DNA of 60,418 nt, the filler included, from Sluysia triapertura (Eukaryota): assembly GCA_046118255.1 (NCBI GenBank). It is 5 parts of 5 records of this genome, joined end to end, with 100 filler letters (N's around TTAATTAATTAA, not from the genome) between each part and the next. Parts side by side here need not be neighbours in the genome. Positions count along the whole stretch, not along the records: positions 38,295 to 49,470 come from JBJNIA010187811.1; 4 more parts are not named here. One strand, 5' to 3'. Below, piece by piece: positions 12,601 to 49,470 of this stretch. The notes below the pieces were generated by a model. That model did not search any database. It had not been told where the DNA came from and was given only the letters and a program-made list of their open reading frames with translations. Each line of letters begins with the position of its first letter. Position 1 is the first letter of the stretch. Both the position numbers and the translations under genes were made by a program.

Positions 12601-12920
12601 TTAATTAAAAATCAAATAAAACTGAATCTCGATATATTCTCATATAACAATTACAAAAATCAAATCTTTTATATATCAAATATAATTCTATAAATAAACC
12701 TTTTTATATTACAATTATAGTTCTATAGATCAAACTTTTAATTCTTTAATAAATTATTGTCCAACGTTTTAAAAATCGCAGGGGTTACACAACATAAATG
12801 CTGTTACCACAAATAAAATATAAAGTAATAATAAAAATAAAATGAATCTTAACTCTCTACTAACCACTCAAACTTATTTCGTCTTAATGTTATTGCAGAA
12901 GAAAAAGACTCAATGAGTGT

Positions 12921-13020
12921 NNNNNNNNNNNNNNNNNNNNNNNNNNNNNNNNNNNNNNNNNNNNTTAATTAATTAANNNNNNNNNNNNNNNNNNNNNNNN
13001 NNNNNNNNNNNNNNNNNNNN
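12921..13020. other. Artificial contig linker (N run with TTAATTAATTAA)
   Basis: 100-bp spacer carrying stop codons in all six frames. Confidence 0.98.
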
Positions 13021-15139: not shown

Positions 15140-15434
15140 CTCGTTCGCTACCAGCCGGCACATGTGTGCCATTGTAATTCGTTACCAGAGACCAGCGGCA
15201 CATATATGTGCCAGTTATTTTTTGCTAATTTAAGTAGGCATGTTAGGTTCTGTTGCTTTTTGCATGCTTTTGTTAAGTTTAAAAACGATAATATTTGTCA
15301 AAAAAGTATATGGTCTGAATATTCGTAGACAGTTTTAAATATATATAAGTAATTTCAATTAGTGTTGTATTATCCTCAAAAACGTTCTGGTCTGTGGGGT
15401 AGGTTTTTCAAATTATACCCTGGTAGCGAACGAG
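15140..15434. mobile_element. piggyBac-type MITE (295 bp)
   Basis: Perfect 15-bp TIRs CTCGTTCGCTACCAG / CTGGTAGCGAACGAG flanked by TTAA on both sides. An internal ccagc..ggcacat..tgtgcca motif is duplicated. Confidence 0.92.
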
Positions 15435-17287: not shown

Positions 17288-17665
17288 CTCTTCATCCTTT
17301 AAATTTCTACGTCCATTTTCATAAGTTTTTCCAACTTTATTTCGACTATGTGCAGAGATATTACTAGAATTTGGTGAAATTGTTCGTGGTGATACATCAT
17401 CTGTTAAAGTAACATTACTCAATTCACCGACTGGTTCTTGTTTTACTACATTAATATCTGTTCCAAAATGTGTAGTACTTTGAGGTTCTTCTTTAAATTC
17501 ATCATTTCCACCTACGCAATCATCATCATTTACTGACGCATTCGTTTGATCGTCAGGTAAATTTTTGCGAATATTCTTTAAAGCTTGTTCTAAACTTTTA
17601 ATACTTTCCGGATTTAATGATAATATCCAGTTCCGCAGTTCTTGTTCACTGAATGTTTTATTCAT
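17288..17665 (-). CDS. First coding exon of an unidentified gene, possibly a divergent paired-domain/HTH protein
   Basis: ATG-initiated open frame of 126 codons ending at a GAG|gtcag donor. Contains VKQEP (SUMO consensus) and ends HSRNKVGKTYENGRRNLKDEE, resembling the paired-box start NQLGGVFVNGRPL. Later exons not found. Confidence 0.6.
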
Positions 17666-17859
17666 TTTACAGCTGATCGAAAGATAATACTGTTATTTAC
17701 AAATAGATTTGAACTTTCATTACATTGGAATTTGTATTTAATAACAAATATCGATCGCTATATTGTTCCCAATAGATAAATAAAATATAATTTATATATA
17801 TTGACTTGCAATCAGCGTTAAAATACCAGATTACAATATTAACGGCTACTTGTATATTG

Positions 17860-18260
17860 TTTAAAACGTCGTCTAAAGTAAATTACAATACACACTGACA
17901 GACGTTTACTAATTAATTCATATACTAACAGCTGTTTAATAACAACACGTCATTTTCACTATGTATAAAGCACACATGAATCTTTATTCATAGCTGACGT
18001 CATTCTTTATTTGTATGTAGTCAGTACAGTATTATTCATTAATGACTTAGAAATAATTACGAATCATTTAAGGCACACAGACACTACTACATGCATATTG
18101 GCATTTTGATTAATCATTTTGATAATAATTGGTTGATTACTGAAGTGGTATTTATAAGTTAAGGAAAACAAATTTTCAGGCAGTATTACTCATACAACAT
18201 AGCCAAGGTGTGTATACTGACTGAGTGCAGACAAAACTTACATACAAACAGCTATAAATA
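17860..18260. promoter_or_regulatory. Putative upstream regulatory cluster
   Basis: CRE TGACGTCA (17995-18002), E-box CAGCTG (~17929), TGACAG (~17896) and TGATTAAT lie just upstream of the 17665 ATG. Motif matches only. Confidence 0.25.
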
Positions 18261-18954
18261 CAAATGTATACAAATAGATTATACACTTGCTGATTCATTT
18301 TTATTGTACAATGTATATTGTGTCATGTCTGTGTTAGGAGAGAAAATATTGATTTTTGTATCCCATTTTAACCTGAAATTGTCGTTGGCATTTAAAATTG
18401 AGGTTAAACACAGATAATAATATTTATGCACTTTTAAAATTGATAACTATATACTTATAAGTTCACTTTATTAACTGTTTAAAGTCAATTCTATTTTGTA
18501 AGTTTGTATGCGTACATCAACATTGAATAAATGATTCATAATAGTTAATTTCTCGTACACTATTAGAATTTATATAAACTTATTGTTGATTTAGTCAAAT
18601 TTATATCAATTAAATAATAGACCCACTAAAATATAACACGACATGTTTTTGGTTATTTGAAATAACAAGTAGTGGTTAATCTGTGACTATATTTACAATT
18701 ATAATAATAATAGTTATCGAAAATTTCAAAACAAAAATAACAAACACATTTCCCTATAATTTATTTTTAAAATTAAACATTTCAAATGCTTAATCACATT
18801 ACTATAAAATACATTTATATATATATATATAAAGTTTTCAAAAAATTTAAATTAAATGAATAAAAAGAAAGCACAATTGTTAAATATATGTATAGAATAA
18901 TAATTTCTCAATTTTTTAATTAGTAAAGTACAAAAAATTGTTATTTCGTTTTAT

Positions 18955-21900
18955 TTAATTTGTTATCTTCAATTTTTTCTGTATTGACTTTTCATTGGCT
19001 AATGCTAATCGTCGAATATTTGCTATACAATTGGCAGCTGCTTCTTGTAATTGTTCATCCTGTTAGCAAAATAAAATACATTAAAAGTTATGTTTGATAA
19101 ATATATCAGTAGTTTATTTATAAAGCGGCAATATAATATTAAATATTTAAGTTACCTACAAATATCAGTAGATAAAATAAATTTAAAATATTTGTTAAAT
19201 GAATGTATATAAGTTAGAATTTATGTAGGAACAAATTGAAAATAAATGATAGATTAAGCACTGTTTGTTTTAAAAAAATATTTTTAATGTCAGAAATATT
19301 GTAAAGAATGAAGTATTTTAAAGCGCTTTTGGTTATTTATCACAATAATATTCGAAAGACTATTAAATTATACGTAATTGTGTAGTACATGTGAGAAAAT
19401 TTCTCTAGACCACCGTGAGAATTTTCAAGTTTTCTAATGAGGTAATTGCGCTGTGGCAAAATTGTGCGTTCTAATTGGTCACTTACTAAAATTGAAATGA
19501 TTCGTTATAAAATTTAGTAGATTGTTAAATTTGTAAGTTAAAGATCCTTTGCTTAATAATTTTCGATATAGATTTATTTGTTATTTGATAATTTTTTTGT
19601 TTCACCTTTTTATTTGTACGTATTTGTTTTACATAAATATTATTAAAATTATTGTACTTTTCCAAAATTAAAAATAAAATAAAAACACTGAAATGCATTT
19701 TACACAAAATAAAATAAAATTATGAATAAACAAAAATTATTCTGTCTCTTTCCGTAATTCAAATTAAAGTGATAAAAATTTCATTTTAATCAATTAAATT
19801 ACTGTGTAAGCAGTAAAATAAATTTTGATTTCTTTTTAAAGATCGCAATCAAGATTCAAAGAACATCTTTTATTTAATATATACAAACTATGAATATTTT
19901 TCAAACTTGTAATTTCCGTGACATGGATTATAAAACAATTTATCAAATACATACACGCACTATTAAAAACATAAATTGAACGAATCCAATTCGTGTATGT
20001 GTGCACATAATTAAATAAAAATGTTAATTTATGCAAATTGACCTTTAAAAATCGGAATATATTTGATTTAAATCGATTGGGAAAAACGCATATGTAATAA
20101 TTAATTTTAGTACAGAAAACAATGAAATAGAATCATGCTTTATGGTTTTATTGAAAGCATCAAAATTACAAGAAAATTGATATTTTTACTTGGTGTCTAT
20201 TTGAAAATTCAATGTTACAAATGTACAAATTTAAAAATGCATTAATTAATTTGAAAAATGTAAAAACTCAAAAACCTAAACGTGGATTTATAACTTTTCG
20301 TTATGGCGATATTTAAGATGAATAATAATTACTAATACTATTACTGGTCATCCTGAATCAAATTAACCGAATATTTTAGTATAACATCTGATTATGGTAA
20401 AAAAATCAAGACAAAGTCGATGGAAGTATGATTCGATTCAAAATGATCCAGAATCAAAAAATAAGCACAAAAAAACAAGAAATTGGTTAAGAAATCAATG
20501 ATATATACATTAAACAAACAAGGAGCAGTATGATGAAATAAAGTCAAAAATAAAAGGAGCGTGTTTCAGAGTTGTGTTTATAGAACATCAAAGCAAAGAA
20601 AAGTGCAAATAAATTTTATAAAAAAAGCTCAAAAATTTCAATAAGTAAATATTACTTCAGATCCAACCAAACCCAGCAATAACTTAACCACCCCATGTTC
20701 ATGCATGGTGACACAATTTTCTGGCTGTTTACTGAGTTGATGTAATGCTTTGGCAGTTGAACGGTGAACATTTTTGTCAGAAGATTTCAAATAACGTACC
20801 AATGGAGCTACTGCTCCAGTTTTACCGAAATCTAAACGATTAGTACCCCAATTACAACAACGTGCAATAGCTTCTGATAATTGAGATCGTAGATTGTCAT
20901 CAGTCTGTAATGAAATGTGAATTATTTTATATAGCTAACGTCATTAATTTTTAAGCCAATCACATTTTCTCATTTAGTAATTAATATAAATACACACACA
21001 TGTATATAAATTGAAATTTTTATTATAATTAAATTGTTTCTTTGTTAAAATGTACGAAATATTTGGCACGAAAACAAATTATACTTCAATTACAGTTTTT
21101 GCATCGTTTTTAAATGTCCCTGATGACATTTATAGGGCCCGAGATGAGTTTAGTTTTATTTTAGAGAAAAACGTGATATTCATAATTATTGCTGAAACGT
21201 ATCCAAATTATGCAGAATCGTTGATTAATGAAGTCGACAAGTGTAGACGAGCGTTTCCGTGCTTATGCATCCACACCCGCGAGTATCGATGTGTGTAAAG
21301 ACGATCGAGCCTTTACTATGCATATGTTTAAAAAGTCATGACTGATAAATAGGCCCGGATTTACATTTGTTGCCTAGGACCCGCTTTAGTATTAGTCCGC
21401 TTCTGTATGCTAATATCCATTCATTTTCTACTGAATTTAGATTGCAGCATCGCAGAGGATTCTTTCAGCTAATTTAGATAAACATAGATATCACTGACAA
21501 TTAAGTGTATTCTAGACTACATTTCAGACCATTATATTTTCACAGCATTTCTGACGTTTTGGGTAATGAATATCTTCGATAAACTATTTTCCCTGTTACT
21601 TGGATGTTGTTACGTTTCATGTTTAATATGAACGATCCATACCTCTCTTTCGGCTTTTCTTCGTTTCTTTGAATGTGCAACTTTTATTTTCCAACAAATG
21701 CATCATAAATTTCACTTTCTTTCCTCAATACTTGTTGTTTTTATTCACAATTTCGAATCAATGTATTACATAAAATAAGCGTTTCGATTCAAAAACATTG
21801 TACATTTATTTCTTTTTCTATTTTTCTAGAAACAATTTTGCGACCCCACGACGCTGCGCCCCGGGACACCTGTCCCTCACTGTACCCCTTTAAACAGTTG

Positions 21901-24288
21901 CAGCCAACGACTTTATCATGTTCGTTACAGGCGTCTACCTTATCAGTTTTCGATAAGATGTTGTACTAACTTTTAGCACTTAAAAAATCCAATGTCATTT
22001 AAAGTCATTTCATAAGAAAAAGATTTTCTTCTCAAGCTTTAGTAGCAAACATGTTAAAAGCTTATTTAGGGAAAAATTTGGAGATAATACATTAAAAATG
22101 AAAATTATGTAAAGCAAAAATCTGAAATTATAACTTTATCAAATGCAATTGATGATGAAGTGTTGATGAAATGATGAAAGAAAACCCTTTAGATGAAAAT
22201 GATTGGATGATAAGTAAATACGAAGCTCAGTAACTAATATTTTACTTAATTCGCAAAGGATGGAAATTCGTTACTTATACATGATCCCGAACATAGATTG
22301 TACATTAAAATTTCAATGTAATACTTATTTTAATTGCCTCTTATCTTACAGGGTTTTTTAAAAATTTGAAACATATTCCCAAATTTTATATTGTGTAATT
22401 TTCTTGATAACGCATTTAGGTATACTTTACTTTTGAATATTAAAACAAATTGATACAAAATATATTAAATATTATTAAAACACAAATTAACGTTTTATAA
22501 AACTTAAGAATGTCAAATGTACGAAAATTTTTACGAAAACAGCTTTGAGTGTCATGCAGGGGAATATAGGGCTTTGAGCAATCCCAGCAAAACACAATTC
22601 GGAGCCATTTCATACAAGAATATAGAAATTTAATGTGAGTTAAAAAATATAGTAAAAAAAGCAAAAAATCAAAATTACACAATAATGAACTGCGTAAAAA
22701 AATTATTTATTTAAAAAATAATACAATAGTTATTTATTTACAAGCGATACAACATATGGAATAACCTAACGAGTGCATTTGAAGTTTGAGTGTCGAAGAA
22801 GCGAGATCTTTGAAAAGTTATGCTATTCCTGTTGCATATGTGTGACATACAAGATTTTTTGTAATGCTATTTGTCAAAAATTCAATAACATAGTTAATTA
22901 AATTAATTTTTTTTGAAAATCAGTTTACAATATTAGAATAATTAGCGCGTTGTGACCGTCATTTAGTATTATTTAAAAAAATTTATTGCTTACTAAAAAA
23001 TCGATGTCTCATGAAAAATGATCGATTTTAATTTATAAAATCTAAAAAATATTTTATTTTTACATCGGCACCCCTCAAAATTTGGCGCCCGGCTTGCGCA
23101 TTCCCTTATCTGGTGTTGGTGCCATGACAATGACTACTTTTCTAAATATTAACCCACTATTGTCGACAATCGAGCTTTCTTTTATTATTATATTCTTCTT
23201 TAAACATCGATTTATTGGCTGTTTCTGAGGAAATCGAATGATTCGACCACAAACATATATAACACAAAAAATATTGACTTTAATTTAATACAGTACAATG
23301 AACATTACGAATGATGTTTATAATGAATTCATTTAAATATTTATCAATTCCATTTATTAAATTGTAATTAGTAATAAGATAATGATTTTAGAACTTGATT
23401 TCTTTTATTTTCTATTTCTAAATAAATTATCTACTTTAAGTAGTTAAAAAAATAACTATTATTATTAAATTTACAAACCGTTGTAGTTAATTTAGATAAT
23501 AATGGAACAACACCATGATCAGTAATAACTGCTAAATTTTCTTCATCTGCAGCAATTTTAGCAATAGCAGCACAAACACCACTTAATACTTCAATATATT
23601 CAGATCTTAAAAGGCTGACAATTAATTCTAATCCACCAACAAACGATCGAACCATTTCACCAGCATCCTGGAAATTAATATAAAATATATTTATACTATT
23701 TACTATTTTAAGTAAATAAAATCATTTGTAAATTGTTTTTAATAATCATAATAATAATAACTTTCGAATTTCCTATACAAGGACAAAGAGCCCAAGCTGC
23801 ATTTGTTTGTACTTCTGGATTTGTATTTTTCAATAAAGACCATAATAATCTAACGCCATCTTGTTTTTCAATAATAGATAAACATTCTGCTTCTTCAGCA
23901 CATCTACCAACTGCACTCGTTGTGTTAACTAACAAGGCCTGATTGGTACCAGTTAATAAACTGACCAATGGACTAATACCACCAGATTTCTTTATAACTA
24001 ATCTATTAGGAGGACTTTTAGCCATTTCACCAAGTGCTCCAACAACATTTATTTGAACCTGTAGTGAAATTATTTCATTAATATAAAACTTTTATGAAAT
24101 ATTATAATAATAACAATAAGGTAAACAAAATATAACAATGAAAAGTAAACATAAATTTTATATAAACAACTTTTTCTAATTTAAGAACCAAATGAATCTT
24201 TGGAGATGAAGAATCAACGTAAAGATACTTTTTCATCTGTCAAAAATATTAAATTACTATTAAGAACAATACTTTAATAATGATAATA

Positions 24289-24327
<39 letters not shown>

Positions 24328-25154
24328 GTTAAAATTGCTATTTCCTGTTTCAGTAAGCACATTTTCTCTATGAGCTTTATTTTTAATTATACTTATTATA
24401 TCGACATATCACAGTAATTTTATTTTAATGTTCTTTCAATTTAAAATTATACCCACGATAACTAATACATTATATTGATATATTCAAGAAATGATTAATT
24501 GTAATAATTTTTACTACTTACATTTAGCAGTAACTAATTTTAAAATAAAAACTTACTTCTTCAGGTTGATCATTTAATATTCCAACTAATTTTTCAATAA
24601 CTTGTAATTTTTGAAAAATTTCCACATTTTCAGGCGATATAGCACATTTCCAAATAGCACCAGTTGAAGCTGCTAATAATTCTTTATTACTTGTATCTTT
24701 TAGTAATTCTACCAATGGTTTTAAACCACCATGAAATCGAACTAAATCACGAATTTCTTTTTCTTCGGCACATTTGAAAATGGTTGCTGCACAATGCATT
24801 TGTAATTCTTTATTATCACTATTCAAATACTTAACCAAATCTTCTATCATACCTTCAGTTCGTATGGCAATACGATAACTTTTCTAAGTATAGAAATATA
24901 AATAATAATAATTGAACAAAAACCCACTTCTGATGCACATTCTTGTAAAGTACCAACAATTGGTATCAGCATATTTTGCATATTGGGATGATTAAGCTTC
25001 AATAACTTTGTTAACAAAGAAATAATACCGGATCTTTTCATTGCTTCTTTGTTTTTGCTTGATTTACTGCAAGACCATAGTGCCAATGCAACACAGCGAG
25101 CTACCTCAATATCTCTGGCAATTTCACTGTCAGTACTTCGCATATTTGGATTTC
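18955..25154 (-). CDS. ODAD2: Outer dynein arm docking complex subunit 2 (armadillo repeat protein ARMC4), 3' half
   Basis: Exons 25154-24928, 24883-24557, 24058-23762, 23667-23479, 20904-20656 and 19059-18955 with GT-AG borders. Diagnostic peptides: [63 protein letters not shown], and C-terminal [21 protein letters not shown]. Confidence 0.95.
21050..21900. mobile_element. Degraded hAT-like transposon remnant in an ARMC4 intron
   Basis: ETYPNYA...CRRAFPCL weakly resembles the hAT dimerisation domain. GC-rich hAT-MITE-type ends at ~21350 (aggcccggattt) and ~21850 (gcgccccgggaca..tgtccc). A similar end lies at ~23060-23110. Confidence 0.4.
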
Positions 25155-25295
25155 CTGTTAATATAATAATAATAATTGTTTCAGGACATAAAGTTCCGTT
25201 TTTCTTATTATATTGACAACCTTGATGTGTGTGGGTAAACATAAGCATGTATGTAGATAAACAATTAATTTACTCAATGTTTTTATAATCTAAAA

Positions 25296-25560
25296 GCAGG
25301 CATGCACAAACTTTTTAAGTTGCGCCCCCATTTCAACATATTTATTTTTGGCGACCCCAACTTAATAAAAAATCGTAACGTCACTATAACAAAAAAAACT
25401 TCATAAATAAAATAAACACCTTTTTAATAACAAAAATGTATTTTTCTATTTCTTATAAATTAAATAAATTAAATATTATGAACAACAACAGTTCTAATTC
25501 TTTAGCTAAAATAAAGAAAAATTAACAAAATTAAATTTTAATTCTTTATATCAAAAATGC
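25296..25560 (+). mobile_element. hAT-like MITE fragment, copy 1
   Basis: About 250 bp, closely similar to 27745-27950(-) (ccccatttcaacatatttatttttggcg..ccccaacttaataaaaa..). Confidence 0.7.
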
Positions 25561-25584
25561 AATATTATGTCTGTTAATATATTT

Positions 25585-25684
25585 NNNNNNNNNNNNNNNN
25601 NNNNNNNNNNNNNNNNNNNNNNNNNNNNTTAATTAATTAANNNNNNNNNNNNNNNNNNNNNNNNNNNNNNNNNNNNNNNNNNNN
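25585..25684. other. Artificial contig linker
   Basis: N run with TTAATTAATTAA. Confidence 0.98.
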
Positions 25685-25753
<69 letters not shown>

Positions 25754-26230
25754 TAAAATAAAAACAGAAAAATAATACTTTTATTAATGTTTTATATTTA
25801 ACATGATCTTTTCTTTTAATGTAATGAAATATTTTTACATAAAAATAAATGAATTTAAATAAAGTGAAATTTGTTGACTTAGAATGCAAAACCGATTAAA
25901 AGGTGTAAATTGTGATTCTAATGTTATGAGATAATGAATAAAAAATGTTTTAAATGAACTTTTAAATATACGTTGTTGGTTTTGAATGAAAGTAAAGTTT
26001 GGATGTTGAAAGATTGTAAATTTAAAATGTTTTGAAATATGTAAAATAGTTTTAATGGATCTAAAAAATAAAATATGAAAAAGGTTTTGATAATTTTTGA
26101 AAAGGTAACAAGTTAGTTAAGGTATTAAAAGAAATGAATGCAAGATGTATGTAAAAAGGCGTAATATGTAACTAAAGATACTAATAAAAAATTCCGTTTT
26201 AATTATAATGATGTTTGAAAGTCATTTTTG
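25685..26230 (-). repeat. Family D leader (AT-rich conserved block next to (ATA)n)
   Basis: ttgtgattctaatgttatgagataatgaataaa...ttttaatggatctaaaaaa block is shared with ~30360-30560 and ~37095-37280. Confidence 0.8.
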
Positions 26231-26599
26231 TTGGTGCGTTAAATATGATTTTATTTTTATGTTAAAATTAAATTTTTGAAGCAACAAAAAGATATACATT
26301 TTTGGCATTTATTTTTTAAATTAAAAATGAAAAGTGACAAATAACAATTACATAAAACTTTATTTATTATGTAGATAAAAGTTAAATATACTGTCCTGAA
26401 TGATGTGACACGAAAATTTCCTGTTCCGTTATCTGAAGAAAATATAAAAGTTATAATACTATTGTTAGCAGTGTACAATTTATCTACTTTAAGTTTATTG
26501 ATATTCGTCTCGTTAATGCTCGCGTTCAGGTTAGAAATTACAAGGGATCTTAATATATTCCCGATTCGATGAAGTAGATTGGTATCCTGTAAAGAATTA

Positions 26600-27339
26600 G
26601 TGAATGAATTCGTCAGTTCTTCTATAGCATGGGCATATATACAGTTGCTTCCTTATTTGACACAATTTCCGTGTTTGTCGGTGTTAGATAGGAACGTTGC
26701 TCTTTTGATGTCTTTACCAAGATCCATATTAGTCCAATGAGTTTGGCATAGATTGTACTGGAATGCATCACCTTTGTAATCTTTAAGTTTGTAAACATCA
26801 TCATTATATTTATCAAATTCATTATGATCATTTTTATAGTTTTTAGCTTTATAATCAAAAAGTTTATAATCGTTGATTTCGTAATCATTAATCTTATGAT
26901 TGTTAAGTTCGTAATAATTTATTTTATAAACATCAAATTCGTATTCAACATTTGTATAATCGTCAAATTGGTAATAAATACTCTTATTGTCATTAGGTTC
27001 ATAAACAACTTTTGTATAATCGTCAGATTCGCTATCAACATCTTTAATCACCTCATCAAGAGTAAATAATATAAAAAACTCATTCGTATTTTGAATACAT
27101 AATTTAAAACCTCTAACAGTAGAATTATCTTTAACATACAAGTCTATATTTGGTGGCGTATGTACTTTCAGAATAATACGCTTAATTTTTGTACAACAGT
27201 TCAATTTATTTAATGAATGAAGAGTACGATTAAATAAAAGCGTTATCGTTAACAATCTCAATTCCGGCATTGTATGAACTAAGCTATAATTACACTTGTA
27301 ACTAACAACACCATTCTGATCATTGATCTCAGATCGCAC
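26600..27339 (-). pseudogene. Intronless ORF: 'TPPN' segment, Asp/Tyr pentapeptide repeats and a degenerate C-terminal CCCH finger
   Basis: 228-codon ORF. Read through its stop it gives IKRATFLSNTDKHGNCVK*GSNCIYAHAIEEL, a Tis11-like finger with the first Cys lost. Confidence 0.65.
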
Positions 27340-27742
27340 CTTTTTCTGATTGTATCAGCCAATATATAACTAATTTCTCGAAAGTCATTTAAGCTTCTAA
27401 ATACATTATAAATAGGATTATTACGCAATAACCTTTTTAATTGTTGAAATTCGTCCATAATCTTCACGACATCCTGAGCATACAATTTAAATTTGGATTA
27501 GAAATCTCTGTTGGATTTATTTGTTCAATTGACATTGCCTTTCCAAAATAAGTTATGTTATTCAGGTAATTATTATTTATGAAAACATTAGCAAGTACCA
27601 AGTATCCGTGCATCAATATAGAAGAATATATATGATTAAGGCCACAAAATATTTGATATACAAAATAGCTAATTTGATCATACGAACATTCTTCTTTTGA
27701 TGATATTATACGATGTAATTCTGTTTTTACAAAGCTAAACAT
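27340..27742 (-). pseudogene. Intronless degenerate MAP kinase fragment (subdomains V-VII)
   Basis: FVKTELHRIISS...QISYFVYQIFCGLNHIYSSILMHGYLVLANVFIN..ITYFGKA matches MAPK METDLHxII..HIxYFLYQILRGLKYIHSAxVLHRDLKPxNxxIN..ICDFGLA. HRD and DFG are destroyed. Confidence 0.8.
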
Positions 27743-27744
27743 TA

Positions 27745-27950
27745 AAATGTAAAGAATTAAAATTGAATTTTGTTAATATTTCCTTATTTTTGCTAAAGAA
27801 TTAGAACTGTTGTTTTTATAATATTTAATTTATTTAATTTATGAGAAACAGAAAAATACACTTCTTTATTAAAAGGTGTGTAGTTTTTTTATGGGTTTTT
27901 ATTAAGTTGGGGCGCCAAAAATAAATATGTTGAAATGGGGTTGCAGCTTT
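27745..27950 (-). mobile_element. hAT-like MITE fragment, copy 2, abutting the 5' end of the MAPK fragment
   Basis: Reverse complement matches 25320-25560. Confidence 0.7.
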
Positions 27951-28049
27951 ATATAATGTTATAGTTGTGTCAAATTACTACTCATATAATTAGTAAATCA
28001 GTTGTAGTAGTAGTAGACACTAAAGTAAAGTTTGTGGCAGTAGTGGGAG

Positions 28050-38294: not shown

Positions 38295-39499
38295 AGAAAA
38301 CATATAATTTTACTTTAAATAAGAAATACACACTATTTGACAAATTACTCGACAAAAAATATAACAGGAATTTTAATATATAATGCTTTGAAATATTAGA
38401 GTTTATTTTCTCTAATATTTGATTGAAAATTTTAGTGATTTTAAAATTGTGGCAACACAATTTTTTAGTTCAAATAGTTTATCTGGATTTTAAGTCTTAG
38501 ATATGTAAGACAATCCTTATAAAAAATTATCTTACGTTCATGGGCATTATTGAAAATTTAGTTGTCGAATATCAAATCCAAGAATGTTCCTCCGGTTTAA
38601 CATTCGAAATCGTATACGCTTCTGTCTATATATAACGTTTTCGATTCTGTATTCTTACTTTTATATTTTTTGTGTATCTTGGTATTATTTGACAATTTCT
38701 TTTTATACCAAGTCGAGCAATTGTAGTTGCGTAATAGCTGTGATGTAACGTAGGCACAATTGCAAATGTTAAAATTTTTGTACAAATTAAAAATTTGCAT
38801 CAAAATTAAAGATAATTGGCCAAAATAAAAATTATTCGTAGCAAATAAAATTAATTATAATTAAAATGTCATTGCAAATTTTGAAATTTTATGTTTATGT
38901 TATGAATTATATTTTGGAAGTTGTGGATTAACTGATAAAACCATTAATGAGATGATTGCAATAAGATTTACAGTGTAATGACAGTGAACGTGGAAATTTC
39001 TAGTTGAAATCAATATGTAGATCTGAAAGAGGTTATTTATGAAATTGTGCATGAATGTTTCGTAAGATGTTCTATTACGGTCGTTTTCAATTAATAGTTT
39101 TCTCTAGCCCATAAAAGGTCTTTGGGCTAATGAAGAAATAAGGATGAAAAAAAGAAGTATCTAGAAAGAACTTCGATGTTTAATTTTGCTACGTTAGTTT
39201 AATCAATGATACTTCTTTTAGAGATTTACATTGTGATAGCATATCAATCTTAATTACTAATGTTAACAATTGCTGGAAACGACTTGAATTTAATTTAAGA
39301 AAACAGTAAATTGTACTATCGATTTAAAACCTTGATTCTATTGTATTAGTATAATATGGTTCACCACTTCTTTTTTTTAACATTGAAATAAAAATCAATT
39401 AAATTTATTAATATACACCACATCACCATACAAATAATGCACATACCGTAGTGTCATCGACACTGTTGCTATTATTAATAGTCCATTTAGTTTTTGATT

Positions 39500-40602
39500 G
39501 ATTGTCCAATCACGACTTCGACAAAATTGAAATGAATGATATTGGTCGCGATTGGACATCAATGTTATGTTGTGCATGGTGATAGCAAACTATCATCAAT
39601 AATGACAATTTGATAAAAATAATGACTAAAATGTCATCATTGATGATGGCGACAACCAAAATTTAATTTAATATTTAAAGCTATTAAATGATTGATAATA
39701 ATAATAACAATAATAATAATAATAATAATAATAATATTATCAATAAATAAAAATAAAGTGCATAAATATTTCTCTTACTGAAACCCACAAGATCTTTTCT
39801 TTTAAAATCTTTCATTCTACATATGAATAAAATAAAAAGGAAATAAAACTGATGACGTACTGTAAAGGAACAACGGTGACGAGGTATGTTGTGTCTCGGT
39901 TATCGTTGTTGCTTCATATTAAGATAATGAATTGTTTAAAGCTTTGATATATTTGTTTGTAAAGATAAAAGGAATGATTTGTGTTGTACTTGAAACGAAG
40001 AATGTTAGAATAAATTACTAAAATTTATTAAGGTTTGGAATTAAAAATAAGATTTGAGCATTGAATATGATAGTTTGAGGTACTTATTGAAAGGTTGTAG
40101 TTTATTTAGTTTTGAAATACGATTAAAAAATAAATCTTAACGTGTTTGTAATGTGATTAAAATGGGTACTGAAAATGAACATGTGTAAATGAAGTAGATT
40201 TAGCTTGGTGTACTTAGTTAAAGATTTTAATGTAAATGTTTTCTATTTCTGAGGTACTTGTTAACGTTGTTGAATGGTGTTATTGTATTTATGATTTGTG
40301 TATTATACATTGTGGTTGTGGTTTGTTTGATGGAATCGTTTTTGAGTGAATGTTGTGGATTATTCGGGATTGATTATCAAAGTATGTTGTGAGGTAGGTG
40401 GTTAATGGTATTTATCGAATTATTGATATATGAATTGATGAGATGTTATAAATGTAGAGTGTTGTTTATGATGATTGAGTTGGTGTAGTTCAATAGTAAG
40501 AAGTGTGATTGCTTTAGAATTTATGTTTTATTGAAATTTAAATTATGGTTATTGGATATTATGTTTTTAAAAAGTTTTAGGTTGTGAGTGTTGGCCACTA
40601 CA
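39500..40602 (-). promoter_or_regulatory. Family D module
   Basis: gattgtccaatc (39500), gattggacatcaat (39550), inverted repeat at 39590-39607 / 39632-39649 (16/18), (ATA)n, and a start TGTAGTGGCCAAC at 40602. Confidence 0.6.
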
Positions 40603-41951
40603 CTTGTAATTCGTGTGTTGCAAAAACTAATAAAAACTGCAATAATAAGCGGCTTTTGATGTAATAAAATATAATAATATAGTAATAGTAATATTAAAAT
40701 AATGATAATAGTTATAATATAATAAATATGAACTTTAAAATGATTAAAGTCCTTATATTCAACAACTTATATTCATATTTAATAATAGCAAACCAATTAA
40801 GTGATTTTAAAGAGCACAAAAGCGTAAATAATTCAACCAAAGCTAACAATGCAAATATATAAAATTTTTTTTACATTTTTGAACAAAAAACTACAATAAA
40901 AAATGTTTATCATAAAAACTGTCAAAAGATTTTACGAAGAAATTTGTATTGATTCTTCTTTGAATATTATTCATCATTTCAACTTCATTATTTATCAACA
41001 CCATTGATCGAACTTTTACTCCTTTCCAATTTCTATAATTATCAGGATCAGATGTCGTATTCACAGACCATTCAAGAGTTACACCCTCAATCTGTTTGTT
41101 CATTATTAAAAGTTTACGTTAGTTTTTTTGTGAATTAAAAATTTTATGTATTTGGTGGGTATGATTACAATTTAACTTAATGTTGTTGGAGGTAGAATTA
41201 TGTTGAATTGAGCGGATTTGGTTAAATCTGAATGTCGTTCACTTGTTTTACATAAAACGTTTTGTTGCTTACGAAGTAATTGATAATATATTTATGAAAG
41301 TGTTCTTGACATGAATAAAAAGCACCTTTCATAATTTCATGACAAAGAATTTCATTAATATTTAAATGCACATCACCAAAGAATCTTATTTTTATAAATT
41401 CTTTATTTGTTGCATTCAGTACTATTTTTATGGCTTTAATCATGTGTGATCTTACGAAGACTTTTCATGAATGAGTTACTAAAATCAATTTGTTTAAAAT
41501 ATAATTTAGTCTCGAATTTTGGCTCAGTTTTATTTCATTCTTAATACACCAACCTCATTGAGCTTAAAAGTGAATTTTTATTATAATGCATCTTAAATTT
41601 CTTTTATTTTTTGTTGAAAGCAATATTTTAATTCTAAAAACAATGTGGATGCAGCCTACCCTAAATAAAGAAAAATAAAAACTTGAAAATTTAAAAATAC
41701 TAATATATATGTTCTTTTGCAATAATAAAACTAAACATATTTCATACATAAGTTTAGGTGAAATACATATATAGTGATTTGCAGGGCTATCTCTTTTGAA
41801 AATAAATATTTATAGTTTTTCTTTATTTAAAAGAACATACCTATCACTAATGTAAAGCAGTCAGTTAAGTGGCTTGTCCACAGGATTTAAAAGAAAAAAT
41901 TCTTAAAGTTGGAGGTCAAAATGTATATTCACTTTCATAATGTAAGATAAT

Positions 41952-42115
41952 TGTGGGGAGGGCTTTTCGATTTAAAATTATAACAATTATTAAAAATATT
42001 AAATCTTGTTTTTAGTATTTTAAAATTTTTATTAAAAAAGTTAAAAAATTAAATTAACAAAAAGCAATTTAAATTTAAACATTTTAAATTAATAAAGTAG
42101 GCTTAAGGCCTTTTG
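41952..42115 (-). repeat. Repeat family A
   Basis: Reverse complement reads ggccttaagcctac...gccctccccaca. Confidence 0.7.
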
Positions 42116-42396
42116 TAAACAACCAATTAAACAAATAAACAAGGTTAAATTCATTTTTCAGCATAACGTAAAAATGTAAATAATAATAAATAATGTTATT
42201 AAATGTTAACTATAATTAATAAGCGTGATCCATTTATAGCTGTCAGGTAATGTTCGCTCACGTAAGAAATAAATCTGTATAATTCAATGAAAAAAAATAA
42301 ATTCTACATTTTCGTATGTTTTAATCGCATCATTATCTTTAAGAGAATGATTTTGGAATATAATATAATTTGGATTTCTATAAACATTTTATATTA

Positions 42397-43030
42397 TTAT
42401 ATTTTTAGTTTATCGGATAAAAACGTCTCTAACCGTGATAAACGTGCAGAGAATAAATTGAATCCGTATGATATGAGAAAAATACTTATTAGTAAATTAA
42501 AACTAAGACTTGCGATACTAAACAAAAGAGAGTTTACTTGAAAGAATGGCAAAAATTTGTAATCATAAATTGAAACGTTATTCATTTTCGATAGCATATA
42601 TAATGAAATAAATAATAATAAAACGACATAATTAAGTACTATTAAATATTTATATTTATATCGTTCGTACTGTTGATAAAAGGAGTGTAAAAGTACGAAA
42701 CTATAATTAAAAAATACGAAACTAACAGTTAAATCAAAGTTATCATCTGCTACACATCTCCCATTTGTCGGTAATACTACAAAATTGACCAGGATTATAA
42801 ATTTGAGAGCCAATTCTAAGTCATTGACATTGTATTTAGATGTAATTTCATTGTAAAAATTATTAACGATACGTGAAGTAAAACGTAAAATTGATAATGA
42901 GTAAATTAGTAGGTAGTTCATAAGATAAATGAGTCGAGTGACTATTGATGAAATACAATTATTACCACCGTACTTACAACAAATGCTTGAGGTGGCATTA
43001 GCACATCAACAAATTACTGACATCCAATAT
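42397..43030 (-). pseudogene. Degenerate multi-pass membrane protein fragment, possibly GPCR-derived
   Basis: 174-aa hydrophobic ORF. LAILD upstream and NYLLIYSLSILRF are weakly TM2- and TM3-like. Confidence 0.35.
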
Positions 43031-43377
43031 AGCAAGCCATTATTATAATTTTTACTTTCCAAAAAAATCAATAACAAAAATCTTAAATTAATTATTATTA
43101 ATTTATTTCTTAATATATTATTATATTTATATTTTAATATTATTAATTTATATATTAATATTTTATATTTTCAGGAATGCTTGCTGTTTCAAAACTTTCA
43201 ATAGATTTTTGCAAGTATTTATCATATAACTGATTCTTTTGCAGCTCATAATTCAATTTGACAATAACTCGTATGTTATTAATTTTTTCATATATATCTA
43301 ATAAAGCATCTTTTGATGTTTTTACTGAATCCAAATTAATAATCTTATTTTCGGACTGAAATGGCAGGTTTTAAATT

Positions 43378-43698
43378 TCACTTGATCTTTTGACGAATAC
43401 AAAGAATTTGGAAAATGTTATTAATATCAGCGGAATTAAAAGTAATTTCTTTCAGCATACCTTCCATTTGAATTACTTTGTTAAAAGCAACAATAACTTT
43501 TGATTTCTCAATAGATTTCTGTTTGCCAAACAAATCGTAAATAAACAAACTTTGAAAGGAATTAAAAAATTCATTAAGGTAATTTAATATATTTTGCAAA
43601 TTATCAACTTGTTGTGTTAAACTGAATCGAATTAAAAAAATTTGCTTTACTAATGTATGTATCTGGCATTTTAAATACTTGATCTGAAATTCTGACAT
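43378..43698 (-). pseudogene. Unidentified intronless ORF fragment
   Basis: 106-aa ATG-initiated ORF inside the B-A cargo train. No motif recognised. Confidence 0.3.
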
Positions 43699-43801
43699 AA
43701 TACTATTAAAATAAACTTTAATTAGCGATTTTTGGTAATAGATAATACTTTTTAATCACATTTCATTCCATAAATAAATTTAATTGTTATGGTTACTCTT
43801 T

Positions 43802-44270
43802 TTACATAAGCATAACACTGAGTAATTCCTTCCAGCTATTTCTCTTACAAATAGTTTTAGCCCTAAAGGGAAGTATAACCAATATCATTCGATCGATAGC
43901 TACTGAAACTAATAACCATACACTGATATAAGCTAAAGTGTAAAGTAATATCGATACAAAGACAAAAATGAATTTAAGTCGAATTTTTGTCCCAGTATAC
44001 AATGTAGCCATATCATAAACTTGAGTACAAACACTGATAATTAAATAAAATATATCGACAAATGCAAGTACTATTAAATAAAATGTGGTACTTGGGTTAT
44101 TGAGACCTGGTGAAACAAGAACTGCTATAATGAGACAATTTCCCAAAATACCGAATATGACAATCGTTAACCAAATTAATGTACATGAATAATGAATGAA
44201 ATAAAATTCTTTTGAAAATAAAATCGAGCTGTTGGATAATGATGACGACGGTTTCTTGTTATGAGTTGGT
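43802..44270 (-). pseudogene. Truncated intronless class A (peptide-receptor-like) GPCR, TM1-TM3/ICL2
   Basis: FGILGNCLIIAVL (TM1 GN), STTFYLIVLAFVD (TM2 LAxxD), ISVWLLVSVAIDRMILVILPFRAKTIC (TM3 DR, ICL2 P). Terminates before TM4. Confidence 0.85.
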
Positions 44271-44289
44271 GTACAAATGAATGAAACTA

Positions 44290-44682
44290 TCGAAAACGAT
44301 ATTTGTGGTTTTGTTGACGGTATTTCATAGCATAATAATGAATCTTGCGAAATTTCTGATGATGTCGGAAGAAGAACAAAAGAATAAGAAGAAAGGTTGA
44401 AAGTAAAGATAAAAGAAATAATAATGATAACAATAATGTATTAATTATATATTTTAAAATAATGGTGTTGATGATGTTGTGGTGCAATTATAAAGTTATT
44501 GTATGATAATCACATTATATAACAATAATGATAATAATTATTATATATTTTAATACGATTGGATTTGTAATAATACTAGCTATAGTTCATGATAATTATG
44601 TAGAGTAGTTTGATTAATGTTCCGTATATATGAGATATTTTTATGTGGTGAAACATTGATATTTTGATATGATTTCCCTACG
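44290..44682 (-). repeat. Repeat family B
   Basis: Reverse complement begins (c)GTAGGGAAATC and aligns with 45513-45900. Confidence 0.8.
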
Positions 44683-45346
44683 GTATTTATGTTAGTGTGA
44701 CAGATAATAAATATTATTCAACAAGAAATATTTTCAATATTCTTTATGTAATAATTAATTGATGTTATTCCACCATTTAAAATGTAAACTTCAAAATATG
44801 CAACATTTAAGATAATACCCTAAAATTTAATTCACTTAAAATATGAATTGCAAAGTTGCGCTGATTTTTAGGAAAGTGATATAAATCAAAACGTAAACAA
44901 CAATGTTTTTATCAAAAAATCATAAAATATAAAATACACTCAAAGTAATATAAAAGTTATTAGAAAAGAAGAAATCGAATGATAGTTTAATTGTTTTCTT
45001 TAGGGTTGCAAATATATTTAATATGACTTTTCGTTTATTTTAAGTCAGTTTTTAAAATGCGACAAACCATACAGAAATATAACTAATGTTGATTTTTATT
45101 AAATATTCCGCTGAGGTAATTTGTTTTAGAATGACCATTTTTTTCAAAATGATTCAAATCAATTTATAGAAGGTTGATGATTGGAACTTAAACTAACAAA
45201 TTCTGAAAAATGGTTTCAGTAAGAATCTTTTGTGACATAAGGTTTAATTTAAAATACTCGAATTCAACAAATCGTAGTTTATTTCTGTCTTTTGTGTGAA
45301 ACGAGTTGTCGTATTTTGTACCAAATAATCAATTTATTAAATTATT

Positions 45347-45501
45347 TGTTGGGATACCGGCCTAAAGTGCCATTTAGAATAATGGAATATTCTAATCTAA
45401 AATTGTTAGACGGGGCTGATAGCTCACTGGTAGAGCATCGAACTGCGCAGCGAGAGATCCCTGGTTCGATCCTCGGTCAGTCCATTTTATGAAGTCTAAC
45501 A
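45347..45501 (+). mobile_element. tRNA-containing LTR-like repeat, copy 1
   Basis: TGTTGGG...GTCTAACA termini. Internal tRNA-like cassette at ~45413-45484 with A box, B box GGTTCGATCC and a TTTT terminator. Confidence 0.85.
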
Positions 45502-45512
45502 TGTAACACCTT

Positions 45513-45941
45513 TGTAGGGAATTCATCACATAAAAACACTTCACATATACACAGACAATTAAACAAACTACTAAACTCATTTAAAAACAAACACGACCAT
45601 CACATCTAATTATCATGAACTATCGCTATTATTATTACAATTCAGATCGTATTAAAATATATATAATAATTATAGTCATTATTGTCATATAATATGATCA
45701 TATAGTAATAACTTTTATAATAACTTTTATAATAATTTTCATGATAAAATTTCATAATAAATTTCAACAATTATGTATTAATAAACCTAATAACTACAGA
45801 ATTGTTATCATTATTATTATTTCCTATTCCTACTATTTTTTTGTTCATTTTTATTATCAATCTTTCTTTCCCTTTTTATATTATGCAATATATCTGACTG
45901 TGATACCGGAAAATTTGTACTTTTCTATTTTATTTCCTACA
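45513..45941 (+). repeat. Repeat family B (TGTAGGGAA...TTCCTACA)
   Basis: Homologous to 11151/12241 and 44682(-). This copy has inverted TG..CA termini. Confidence 0.8.
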
Positions 45942-46487
45942 AACATTGTTCCACCAATCAAGTATGAAGATTTAAAACCAATTGGTGAATTTATTGCCTT
46001 AAATCCCAATTCACATGAAGAAATGTTAGATGGTAATCAAACTCAAACTATTCAAAATGCAGTGTCCATGACAGCTCCTCACACGATACTTCATACACAC
46101 ACCGGAACCTCATATTATACTGACCCTTCTCAATTGACGCCTGGACCGCCGCTTTATATTCTCAATCCAACAGTTAATTCTCAGCCTGCACATCAATTTT
46201 TGCATCATTCTACTGCATATTCTGCTGTAACTGCACCACCGCCATATACACTTCCTGGAACATCTCAAGCACCAACTGGCACTCATACATATTACACCAC
46301 ATCACCACATCCAACACAGATACATCAAACAAACTATAACACTCTTTCACAACACACACCATATCATTCTCATCATCCAGCAGTATTTTCTACTCTCACA
46401 TTAGGTCTACCACCAGCTCCAGTTGCATCTACTTCTACTACATTATTGGACCCAACACTATCCACAAACCCAATCCAATTTCAATAA
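45942..46487 (+). other. Open Pro/Thr/His/Ser-rich low-complexity reading frame (exon-derived fragment)
   Basis: About 180 stop-free codons, raised GC, PPPY motif. The 5' end is fused to repeat B. Confidence 0.5.
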
Positions 46488-46489
46488 TC

Positions 46490-46978
46490 TGAGATAAATA
46501 TTTAGCTGATCGTAAAATAGCTTTGGAATATTACAAAAAGACGAGTAATGGGTCTGATAAATCATCTTGATAAAAGAAAAAATGGTAGGTTTTATTATGT
46601 TGATTTCTTGAAAAATTTCGAAACTATTTCAAATAGTAAACCTAGTCCAACAAAACATGATCCAGAAAGTAACGTATTTATTGATAAAAAAATGGATCTA
46701 CCTACACGTTTTCGACAATTCGAAATAAGCTAAGAGAAAAAATAATTTCCAAATTTAATAGCACTCTTCAGTCATTTCAAATGTTGGATAAAAATAAAAC
46801 TGGATTTATTACAATAGATTCTATAGATAAACTATTAAAAGAAATAGACATTAAATTAAATGAAACGGACCTTTAACATAAATTAACTAATTTTTATTAC
46901 AATTTGGATGGAAAAATTGATTATATGGAATTTATTCGTACTTTATTTAATCTGCAAGCAAGTCAATGTATCATTTAA
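46490..46978 (+). pseudogene. Degenerate intronless multi-EF-hand protein fragment
   Basis: LDKRKNGRFYYVDFL, LDKNKTGFITIDS and LDGKIDYMEFIR in shifting frames with stops. Confidence 0.75.
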
Positions 46979-47040
46979 TAAAATAATAATTAATAAAAAA
47001 ATAATCAATTAAGTTTATTGAGTTAAAATTTGTTATGGTA

Positions 47041-47628
47041 AATTTTGGTATAACTAGTCAAACAACTCCAAGACTTCTACCAAGTGGTACTGCAGTTAGT
47101 ACAGCTGGTTTATTTGTTTTGTTGACCTTTTTCTACAGCAGACTAAAAGGTGTGAGAAGAAAGGTTATTATGTATTAAAAAACATTTACATTATTTTTAA
47201 TTCATTTATCTCACGCGTTCTATGGTGCCCATTTTATTTATCAAATACTTGCAAGTATTGTAGTTGGAATATCAGTCAAACTCCATTTTTGTAAGATGAC
47301 TCTTTACGGTTCATCATCAGTTGTTTACCTAAGAACAACTTCAATTATATTAGGTATAAGAATTTTTAATTCTATCACCGCAAGTTTTCTACGAATTACT
47401 CAATACTGTGTATATGATGGAGTTAAAATGAAAGGTAGATGCCTCGATCAATTACAGCGTAATGATGTATATTATATGGAGCCTTATGTTCGTCAAGCTT
47501 CAATATTACGTGGTAATCATTATTTAAGTATCTTTTTGAAAGAAAATATTTTAAAGGACGTGATAATCGGAGTTACAGTTATGCATTTGTTATATTGTTG
47601 TTTTATTTTTATTTTTTTTACACAGTAA
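47041..47628 (+). pseudogene. Degenerate intronless glucose-6-phosphatase (G6PC, PAP2 family) fragment
   Basis: One frame with one stop: FGITSQTTPRLLPSGTAVSTAG (cf. [21 protein letters not shown]) and LSHAFYGAHFIYQILASIVVGISV (cf. [24 protein letters not shown]). The PSGH His and the SR Arg are lost. Confidence 0.75.
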
Positions 47629-47682
47629 CGAATTTTGCCGGTTCATTAAATTTCTTAATTTTGTTGTTTTTAATTGTTACAA

Positions 47683-47837
47683 GCCTTAAGCCTATTTTGT
47701 TAAATATAAAAATAAGACTTTTAAAACGTTGTAATTTAATTGTAAGTTATTTAGTAAAAATAATGCTTGATAAAAATACAAAAATGAATAAAAATAACAT
47801 TATTTCAAATAAAATAAAATACTTTTTGCCCTCCACA
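47683..47837 (+). repeat. Repeat family A
   Basis: gccttaagccta...gccctccaca. Confidence 0.7.
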
Positions 47838-48309
47838 CAAGAACAAAATAGGAAAAACGTATCCAATACAAACGAAAAGTTGCTTCTTCATCAAGTTTTT
47901 AGTTTCTGTAGGATAGGTACTATTTCTGGAATTAATTTCAACTCTTTTAATGTTAAACTTTCTTTTTTTAAGATTGTTGGTAGCCAGAAGATGGGAGGAA
48001 GAGTGAGAGAGAGTGTTACAAAAAGTGAAGTTAGAAAGGTAAATAGATCGAAGTTAAGAAAAATTTGGAGTGAACAAAAGAGTTGTGGTAGGAAGAGTTG
48101 ACTTGTTTTATAGAAATTTCTTAAAGTAAAATTTTGAATTTATGTTAGTGTGCCATTGAGGATTTAAATTTTTGAGTAATATGTTTGGCTACCACAAGCT
48201 GAAATTAAAGTTTAAAATTATTTCCTTTAGTAGTTTAAAGATGATTGCAAACTATCATTAAAGGATTTACATAATTAAAAGGCCATTTAAGAGCGTGTAC
48301 CTTTAATAC

Positions 48310-48481
48310 CGTCGGGCTCACCAATTGTTAGACTTCGTAAAATGGACTGACCGGGGATCGAACCCAGGACCATCGCTGCGCAGTTCGATTGCTCTACCAT
48401 TGAGCTATCAGCCCCGTCTAGAAATTTTATATTTCTATAGTCCATTATACTATATGGCACTTTAGGCCTTTTACCCCAACA
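48310..48481 (-). mobile_element. tRNA-containing LTR copy 2 (48481-48326) with adjacent tRNA-Trp-like primer-binding site
   Basis: TGTTGGGG...GTCTAACA, then AT, then TGGTGAGCCCGACG (13/14 match to the Trp PBS TGGTGACCCCGACG). Confidence 0.85.
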
Positions 48482-49470
48482 CTATAATTAAATTTATTAT
48501 ATACTAAAATAATATAAAAGGACAGACTTTTCGCAAGGTTAATATAGAAATAGTTATTCAAGGAGATTTTAGAGAATAATTAAAGAAGATTTTTACAAGA
48601 AGACGATAGAAATTTTATAAAGAAGACTGTAGATGATTATTTTTTCAAACCTAATTGTTAGTTTTAATACGTTTAAGAAAAGTTTAATTGAAATAATAAA
48701 ATTTACTAAATTTTTGATTTAAGCACTCAGTAACATTTAATTACCATATAAAAGCATTTTAAAAAACACTTCAAGTATTTAAATATTAATTGCTAAAATT
48801 AATATTATCCTGAAATACTATAAAAAAATCTGATATAAATTTATAGAGCTAAAATTGAAAAGTTGCTTTGATAAATTAATAGATTGTTTTTTGATTAAAA
48901 TATTATTGTATATTCATAATTCCATTTGATTTTAAACCTCTAATTCTCTTATTACAAATTGACATGCTTCTGTACATTTATAATTTTATTTTTATTAATA
49001 CATAATTTCAAAAAATTGTATTCTTTTGGTATTAAATAAAATAAGAATTAAGCTTGAATTAATATTTTATAAAGTTATATTACGATTATTACTTAAAATA
49101 TAACAAATTTCTTATTACGAAAGTTTCATAATAACTAAATTTATCGAAAGGAGAATCAAAAATAACTATCTAAAACTAAGAAAAAGTAGCATCAAAATTA
49201 AATATTAAAGCCTCCAAATTCTTGTCTTTGTCTCTTAAAAACTGCGAATCTATGTGCTAGTCCTTCATTGAGTAAGTCCAGTATCATACAGAACTTACGT
49301 TATTATTTAATCTTAATCTCATTGCAAATAACTATAAAAATTTTAACATCAAATTTCAACAAATTTACAAATAAATAGCAAAATCGTTTTCTATTAGCTC
49401 CAAAATAAATGTAATTACATAAATTTACTTCAAACTTTCTTTTAAAAATATCAAATACATGATTATCTTT

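Follow-up and report, generated by a model that had tools for sequence, protein, structure and literature searches.

Transposons that capture fragments of genes are well documented from plants (Pack-MULEs, Helitrons, CACTA elements) and from a few animals (bat Helitrons). In the literature searched, we know of no description of such capture in flatworms, and Pack-type elements (Pack-MULE, Pack-CACTA) have been described mainly in plants. Here, we analyzed a stretch of DNA of 60,418 nucleotides from Sluysia triapertura (assembly GCA_046118255.1; five parts joined end to end), which we refer to as the window. One of its parts, a piece of ~11 kb at positions 38295-49470 (JBJNIA010187811.1; 22-35% G+C), carries two head-to-head units of 2.3 and 2.7 kb, located at 45513-47837 on the plus strand and at 44682-41952 on the minus strand. 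Each unit is bounded by a left repeat, B, and a right repeat, A, around contents unrelated to those of the other unit. Our tentative reading is that both units are DNA-transposon-like elements of the Pack type, non-autonomous, with ends of the form TGT..ACA and with subterminal regions that are asymmetric.

As in Pack-type elements, conserved ends surround unrelated host-gene fragments, in this case of a G protein-coupled receptor (GPCR) and of an EFCAB6-like gene; the ends are much commoner than any given cargo, and no enzyme of their own is encoded. However, Pack-MULEs have long terminal inverted repeats and 9- to 11-bp target-site duplications, whereas the units have a terminal match of 7 to 9 nt, unrelated modules behind it, and no duplication. 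Helitrons and Helentrons, with their non-autonomous derivatives, resemble the units in their asymmetric ends, the lack of target-site duplication, the co-orientation of captured fragments, and a 5' end that is more conserved and commoner than the 3' end (PMC4778049, PMC4067079). Nevertheless, Helitrons begin with 5'-TC, end with CTRR-3', and insert between A and T, whereas the units start with (T/C)GTAGGG, end with CCACA, and, in the case of the plus unit, are flanked by T and C. The GC-rich hairpin found 10 to 20 nt from the 3' end of Helitrons is also lacking, as the 3'-terminal 86-101 nt of each unit, folded as DNA, gave z-scores of -0.4 to +0.3 against shuffles, with no stem near the end. 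Helentrons and HINEs (DINE-1-like) have subterminal inverted repeats of 12-15 bp, a 3' palindrome, T runs at the boundaries, and a TT target. In contrast, the units have the 7- to 9-nt motif and no palindrome, TT precedes the plus unit only, and the flanks are of neither the A-T nor the T-T type of these elements.

Ends of the TGT..ACA type are used by integrase-like DDE enzymes, such as those of Gypsy long terminal repeats (LTRs) and Ginger transposons (PMC2836005), and the TGTAG... and ...CCACA (TGTGG on the other strand) of the units fit the TGTNR...YNACA pattern of these elements. Ginger elements have terminal inverted repeats of 40-270 bp and a 4-bp target-site duplication, either CCGG/CCGT or within RTATAY (PMC2836005), but the units have neither long inverted repeats nor such a duplication, their 4-nt flanks being CCTT/CAAG and ATAC/ATTA. 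LTR retrotransposons and solo LTRs differ from the units, which lack two like LTRs, a 4- to 6-bp target-site duplication, a primer-binding site, and a polypurine tract: each unit holds a single B, to which A bears no relation, neither candidate end is followed by a TGG-type primer-binding site, and no polypurine tract lies beside the ends. An initial sequence-only reading of this DNA had already stated that neither paired LTRs nor long terminal inverted repeats were present, and our results agree with it. The hAT elements (Ac/Ds) are similar in combining short terminal inverted repeats with differing subterminal regions of ~200-300 bp and a variable interior. However, they have an 8-bp target-site duplication and YARNG...CNYTR termini, to which the left TAGGG conforms and the right CCCTC does not, and the 8-nt flanks of the units match at 4/8 and 0-1/8 positions. 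Finally, SVA-like elements are modular, with conserved 5' and 3' modules, a variable middle, and occasional host exons, but the units lack the poly(A) or simple-repeat tail at their 3' ends and the target-site duplication of such long interspersed element (LINE)-dependent retroposons, and their ends form an inverted pair. Overall, each of these named families (Helitron, Helentron, Pack-MULE, Ginger, LTR element, and LINE-dependent retroposon) departs from the units in at least one defining feature.

Common ends of the two units

The features of the two units are listed below with their positions along the window, each unit from its left to its right end; depths are summed contig depths.

45513-~45818 (+): repeat B of the plus unit, left subterminal module, starts TGTAGGGAATTCAT
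45693-46484 (+): Pro/His/Thr/Tyr-rich open frame, 264 codons, ATG at 45741, begins inside B; low copy, depth 80-300
45819-45900 (+): pyrimidine-rich stretch after B, T+C 74%; intermediate copy number
46521-46975 (+): EFCAB6-like EF-hand relic with about three EF-hands; frameshift near 46730, in-frame stop at 46874-46876
46920-47599 (+): repeated sequence, mid-copy, with a 149-codon frame (formerly "G6PC"); depth 1.1k-2.6k, 23 contigs at 47248
~47600-47837 (+): repeat A of the plus unit, right subterminal module, ends GCCCTCCACA
44682-~44417 (-): repeat B of the minus unit, starts (C)GTAGGGAAATCAT
43805-44440 (-): GPCR open frame, 212 codons, starts inside B; no ATG
43381-43755 (-): open frame, 125 codons, without family match; low copy, depth ~200
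42400-43005 (-): repeated sequence, mid-copy, with a 202-codon frame (formerly "membrane ORF"); depth 3.9k-5.2k, 47 contigs at 42581
41952-~42190 (-): repeat A of the minus unit, ends GCCCTCCCCACA in unit orientation

The presence of a common left end, as proposed in the sequence-only reading, was confirmed over ~300 bp. Both copies of B start with (T/C)GTAGGGAAWTCAT, and their local alignment scored 78, compared with a mean of 24.7 for dinucleotide shuffles (z = 14), in blocks of 82-91% identity interrupted by indels. The locus is present in one public run (X1, Logan contigs), where exact-match contigs have a depth of 13-15, and copy numbers were estimated from the contigs of this run that aligned at ≥80% likeness. 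At position 45787, the plus-unit copy of B reached a summed depth of 60,070 over 75 contigs, indicating thousands of copies. Per bin, its summed depth was 148,000-317,000 against a baseline of 13-50, values that are partly inflated by low-complexity AT matches, and the minus-unit copy reached 8,000-28,000. The AT-rich positions 44411-44437, at the inner end of the latter copy, were skipped as a repeat in read mapping, so that reads seem to be cut off there, and depth figures near them are unreliable. A 766-nt single-copy contig (depth 13) spans exactly 44652-45414, between the two B copies, and stops 31 nt inside the minus-unit copy. Since a unique contig in a 31-mer graph should run ~30 nt into a repeat, this contig end places the repeat edge at 44681/2, in agreement with the boundary at 44682 originally drawn. 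The stretch 44720-45319 between the copies has a summed depth of 20-76, or ~1 copy. B is a genome-wide high-copy repeat with its 5' edge at the contig break.

Conserved words of B gave one chance match in a 39%-GC metagenome contig and none in viral or prokaryote genome collections, and neither B nor A matched any Rfam family, hammerheads included. A common CTAACAT upstream of both B copies was considered and set aside as not significant. Downstream of B, a pyrimidine-rich tract is present in both units; past the plus-unit copy the depth is 1,600-3,900 at 45842-45872 and then ~84 at 45956. The match between the tract and the same position after the minus-unit copy (21/25) is not significant alone (p = 0.15).

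The right repeat, A (~240 bp), was also recovered in both units. The alignment of its two copies scored 45 against 21±3.8 for shuffles (maximum of 39 in 200; z = 6.4), whereas control regions gave z < 0, in line with the common right end proposed earlier. Both copies contain a common GCCTTAAGCCTA core and end in GCCCTCC(CC)ACA. The last 0.9-1.4 kb before the A ends (46920-47837 and 41952-43300) had summed depths of 650-5,200, corresponding to tens to hundreds of copies, with 47 contig variants at 42581 and 23 at 47248; by a rough depth-based estimate, the A-side kilobase amounts to ~30-550 copies' worth. No protein-level similarity was detected between the two A-side regions.

The termini themselves have a motif in common. 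As seen on both strands of the 11-kb piece, CCCT(N0-4)AC(A/G) occurs four times, and all four occurrences are unit termini (two B starts and two A ends), whereas shuffled sequences contain ~2.1 occurrences at random positions. Each unit therefore reads 5'-(T/C)GTAGGG...CCCTCC(CC)ACA-3', and the end of A is, as had been claimed, an imperfect inverted match to the start of B, over 7-9 nt. Both the B pair and the A pair are significant, and twice within 6 kb they enclose, with one and the same polarity, interiors that are unrelated. The sequence-only reading had counted three such units; we examined the two within 38295-49470, and for these two its claim of different contents in one polarity stands. 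For any one A, the chance that a correctly oriented B lies no more than 3 kb upstream is ~1-2% (rough arithmetic based on ~4,000 B, a few hundred A, and a genome of several hundred Mb), so that two pairings out of two are unlikely to arise by chance.

Gene fragments and repeated sequence inside the units

When compared to each other, the interiors of the two units exhibited no similarity. Their middles (43320-44119 and 45920-46919) had summed depths of 48-300, or ~2-10 copies. In the minus unit, depth climbs toward the A end through values of 200, 650, 1300, 3900, and 5200. These results support the view that the ends are far commoner than the interiors, as expected if many subfamilies have ends in common. 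The 264- and 212-codon frames, both beginning inside B, exceed the longest frames in 200 shuffles (mean of 89 codons, maximum of 141).

The GPCR fragment of the minus unit is the only strongly recognizable gene fragment in the piece and is of the rhodopsin type. Its matching codons (44197-43805) run from the first transmembrane segment (TM1) to the first turns of TM4, residues ~22-150. The identification as TM1-3 made from the sequence alone was corroborated by Pfam 7tm_1 (2.9e-8) and by tblastn against flatworm GPCRs (1e-33). The closest relatives are two UniParc-only proteins (53% and 48% identity), followed by neuropeptide-type receptors of Echinococcus, Taenia, and Schistosoma; a protein search with the 205-aa frame returned one protein only, 46% identical. 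On the basis of these relatives we take the source to be a flatworm, and its base composition would allow a planarian as a guess. TM4-7 were not found anywhere in the piece and are absent for 5.5 kb downstream, and a possible GT donor follows the frame. Protein searches for the parent genes of the cargo in the host genome gave nothing closer than 53% identity, and a contig copy ~90% identical to the GPCR part was observed. The lack of introns had been taken to indicate an mRNA origin of the cargo. For the GPCR this argument fails, because the Echinococcus relative is also intronless (a single uninterrupted exon, 391 codons in 1176 nt), and the fragment gives no evidence of intron loss.

In the plus unit, the fragment previously described as EF-hand was found to be EFCAB6-like, with matches to EF-hand_7 (2.7e-5) and to the EFCAB6 chains in the PDB (9e-11 to 4e-10), and to carry one frameshift and one in-frame stop. 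Together with the ~90% copy of the GPCR part, contigs 97-98% identical over 46567-46970 show that the cargo itself is present in a few further copies, which would be compatible with duplication of whole units. The GPCR and EFCAB6-like fragments are real, truncated, and co-oriented with their units. As for the other cargo originally listed, the Pro/His-rich exon persists as a long open frame, and protein searches with it found no homologue. The "G6PC" fragment was rejected, since its match to PAP2 (E = 0.64), the lack of any PDB match, and low language-model recognition leave a motif resemblance only. The "membrane ORF" (open reading frame) was likewise rejected as a host gene, having no homologues and low language-model recognition and lying within a repeat of at least 47 contig variants. 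Because both frames are located within repeated A-side sequence, we regard them as element sequence rather than host cargo.

Neighboring sequences

A tRNA-like repeat is found on either side of the plus unit.

45355-45501 (+): tRNA-like repeat unit, ~147 nt, with its tRNA-like part at 45413-45484 (72 nt); ends 11 nt before the plus-unit B
48326-48468 (-): inverted copy of the tRNA-like unit, 488 nt beyond the plus-unit A

The two copies are 82% identical over 194 nt, and the unit is made up of a conserved upstream segment of ~58 nt, the 72-nt tRNA-like part, and TTTTATGAAGTCTAACA. The Rfam tRNA model scored 32 bits for the plus-strand copy and 49 bits for the minus-strand copy, while ARAGORN detected nothing in the unit; the anticodon loop is oversized (8-10 nt), and TTTT follows directly. 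The exact ends of the unit recur in hundreds of contigs: 328 diverge immediately past 45501, and 129 do so before 45398. Some contigs show tandem copies. The tRNA-like unit is a separate repeat family, and we give no meaning to its position next to the plus-unit B because the minus-unit B has no such neighbor.

Just outside the A end of the minus unit lie two co-oriented open frames, 40894-41118(-) and 41225-41464(-), of 75 and 80 codons. They were considered as an autonomous partner and rejected, having no PDB match and only a faint one to Pfam DUF7584 (E = 0.032), and may represent either exons or the decayed gene of an element. A 1-kb stretch at 39795-40794 exhibits a strong G-over-C skew of +0.5 on the plus strand and is C/A-rich on the minus strand, as are the first 100 nt of B; its alignment to B was not significant. 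An (AAT)n microsatellite of ~19 units occupies 39686-39743. A hairpin at 39491-39569(+) matched the mir-219 family at 30.9 bits, under the gathering score of 54.5. Its 5' arm, UGAUUGUCCAAUCACGACUUC, has an intact mir-219 seed, its 3' arm contains UUGGACAUCA, and its fold is -26.1 kcal/mol (z = -2.3). The hairpin is possibly a divergent mir-219 gene of the host animal.

Origin and movement of the units

Our tentative reading of the units as a transposon-like family rests on their paired polarity, on an end motif that occurs only at the four ends, on a copy-number hierarchy in which ends greatly exceed interiors, and on the truncated, unrelated gene fragments that they hold. The two units would then belong to a single family of non-autonomous elements, or to two related ones, in a genome of flatworm type. 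Their ends, 5'-TGTAGGG ... CCCTCC(CC)ACA-3', are of the type handled by integrase-like DDE enzymes, and each is followed inward by a different subterminal module, B on the left (~300 bp) and A on the right (~240 bp). Between the modules, family-specific repeated sequence would be combined with low-copy inserts, including host-gene fragments: the N-terminal half of a GPCR in the minus unit and a run of EF-hands of the EFCAB6 type in the plus unit. The repeats with their polarity, the end motif, the order of copy numbers, and the identities of the two gene fragments are observed, whereas the movement of the units, the class of enzyme, and the manner of capture are inferred. The units would move by cut-and-paste and, as in Pack-type transposons, would take up cargo at the DNA level by template switching during excision-gap repair. 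B alone, in thousands of copies, may be a short derivative or a separate relative. It is conceivable, although unlikely, that the units constitute a new flatworm element type outside the named superfamilies and an animal counterpart of the plant Pack-type elements. Such an element would move host-gene fragments without target-site duplications, by means of a 7- to 9-nt TGT..ACA motif and two unrelated modules, with some frames open for more than 200 codons and with its left module alone at thousands of copies.

Several observations weigh against a transposon-like family. Its main weaknesses are that target-site duplications are lacking and that B greatly outnumbers A. No duplication of 2-9 bp was found by eye at either unit under several alternative boundary placements, and no empty sites were found; the sequence-only reading had likewise reported no target-site duplications. 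B is ~10-100 times commoner than the A side, and most B copies are therefore not within B..A units. The terminal inverted match is imperfect and only 7-9 nt long; beyond it, B and the reverse complement of A have no extended match (z from -0.9 to 2.5), the two modules being unrelated in either orientation. The A copies are only weakly alike (64% identity over ~249 bp), and a 194-codon open frame at 47517-48098(+), longer than any in shuffles and without family match, crosses the plus-unit A terminus at 47837. No transposase or autonomous partner, including any Rep/helicase ORF, was found within the 11-kb piece. In addition, the depths are sums over Logan contigs in AT-rich DNA and serve as rough guides, not as copy counts.

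The excess of B and the missing duplications are what the main rival explanation builds on, which we consider rather unlikely: a mosaic of independent repeats in intergenic DNA rich in repeats. B would be a self-contained short high-copy element (solo LTR, short interspersed element or similar to a miniature inverted-repeat transposable element), and the A sides would be fragments of further mid-copy repeats. The pieces of GPCR and EFCAB6 would be ordinary decayed or duplicated gene relics, and B..A no mobile entity at all. Consistent with this, B has a TGTAG 5' end and a possible 3' end of its own, CTACA at 45794-45798, with depth falling sharply near 45820; the segments beside A are also repeats, with no relation between the two; the A-pair similarity is weak; and two cargo calls turned out to be repeated sequence. 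Nevertheless, a mosaic leaves unexplained why B and A are paired twice in co-orientation and with similar spacing (2.3 and 2.7 kb), and why the CCCT..ACA motifs, of which the 11 kb contain only four, sit exactly at the four block ends, in inverted pairs. Moreover, the similarity between the B copies extends ~20 nt past the putative CTACA end. The mechanism preferred in the sequence-only reading, an RNA-mediated composite retroposon (SVA-like or by LINE-driven template switching), in which B would act as a promoter, A as the 3' tail for a partner reverse transcriptase, and the cargo would come from spliced mRNAs, appears improbable. EFCAB6 genes are multi-exon in other animals, and the EFCAB6-like stretch is continuous over ~450 nt. 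The co-orientation of cargo and unit also favors this mechanism, and the rise in depth toward the A end of the minus unit loosely resembles 5' truncation. However, the depth drop of the plus unit at ~46920 is abrupt rather than gradual, there is neither a poly(A) or simple-repeat tail nor a target-site duplication, no reverse transcriptase lies nearby, and an inverted terminal motif is unexpected for target-primed reverse transcription; the GPCR family, intronless in Echinococcus, offers no sign of intron loss.

The head-to-head arrangement could also be one structure, a 5.9-kb palindrome A'-X'-B'-(830 bp with the tRNA-like unit)-B-Y-A. It would be either a foldback or MULE-like element with A as outer inverted repeats or a local inverted duplication, old and since remodeled. 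We regard this as very improbable. The A copies are indeed the outermost inverted repeats and the B copies lie head to head, but the arms carry different genes, which excludes a simple duplication, and the stretch that separates the B copies is single-copy (contig depth 13). A solitary third unit elsewhere, as given in the sequence-only reading, would also speak against one structure. With regard to a Pack-MULE/Mutator-like duplication of 9-11 bp, the flanks of the individual units are unrelated, and the 9-nt sequences on either side of the entire palindrome (TAAGATAAT and CAAGAACAA) agree at 5/9 positions, which is near chance in A-rich DNA. Least probable of all, in our view, is that the long frames are exons of live genes, with B an inserted upstream repeat that may serve as a promoter or 5' exon. 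The two frames that start inside B and surpass all shuffles, the pyrimidine-rich tract after B in both units, and the possible GT donor after the GPCR frame would fit such an arrangement. Against it, the GPCR frame has no ATG and stops inside TM4, with the remaining segments missing downstream; the EFCAB6-like part is broken; and A and the terminal motif are left without explanation.

If the units do not move, the locus would be a repeat mosaic with gene relics, and it would serve as a warning for annotation, both for truncated GPCR models and for spurious "membrane" ORFs in repeats. If they move as a whole, they would give rise to exon shuffling and to truncated receptor genes in a repeat-rich flatworm genome, and would account for part of its unclassified repeat load.

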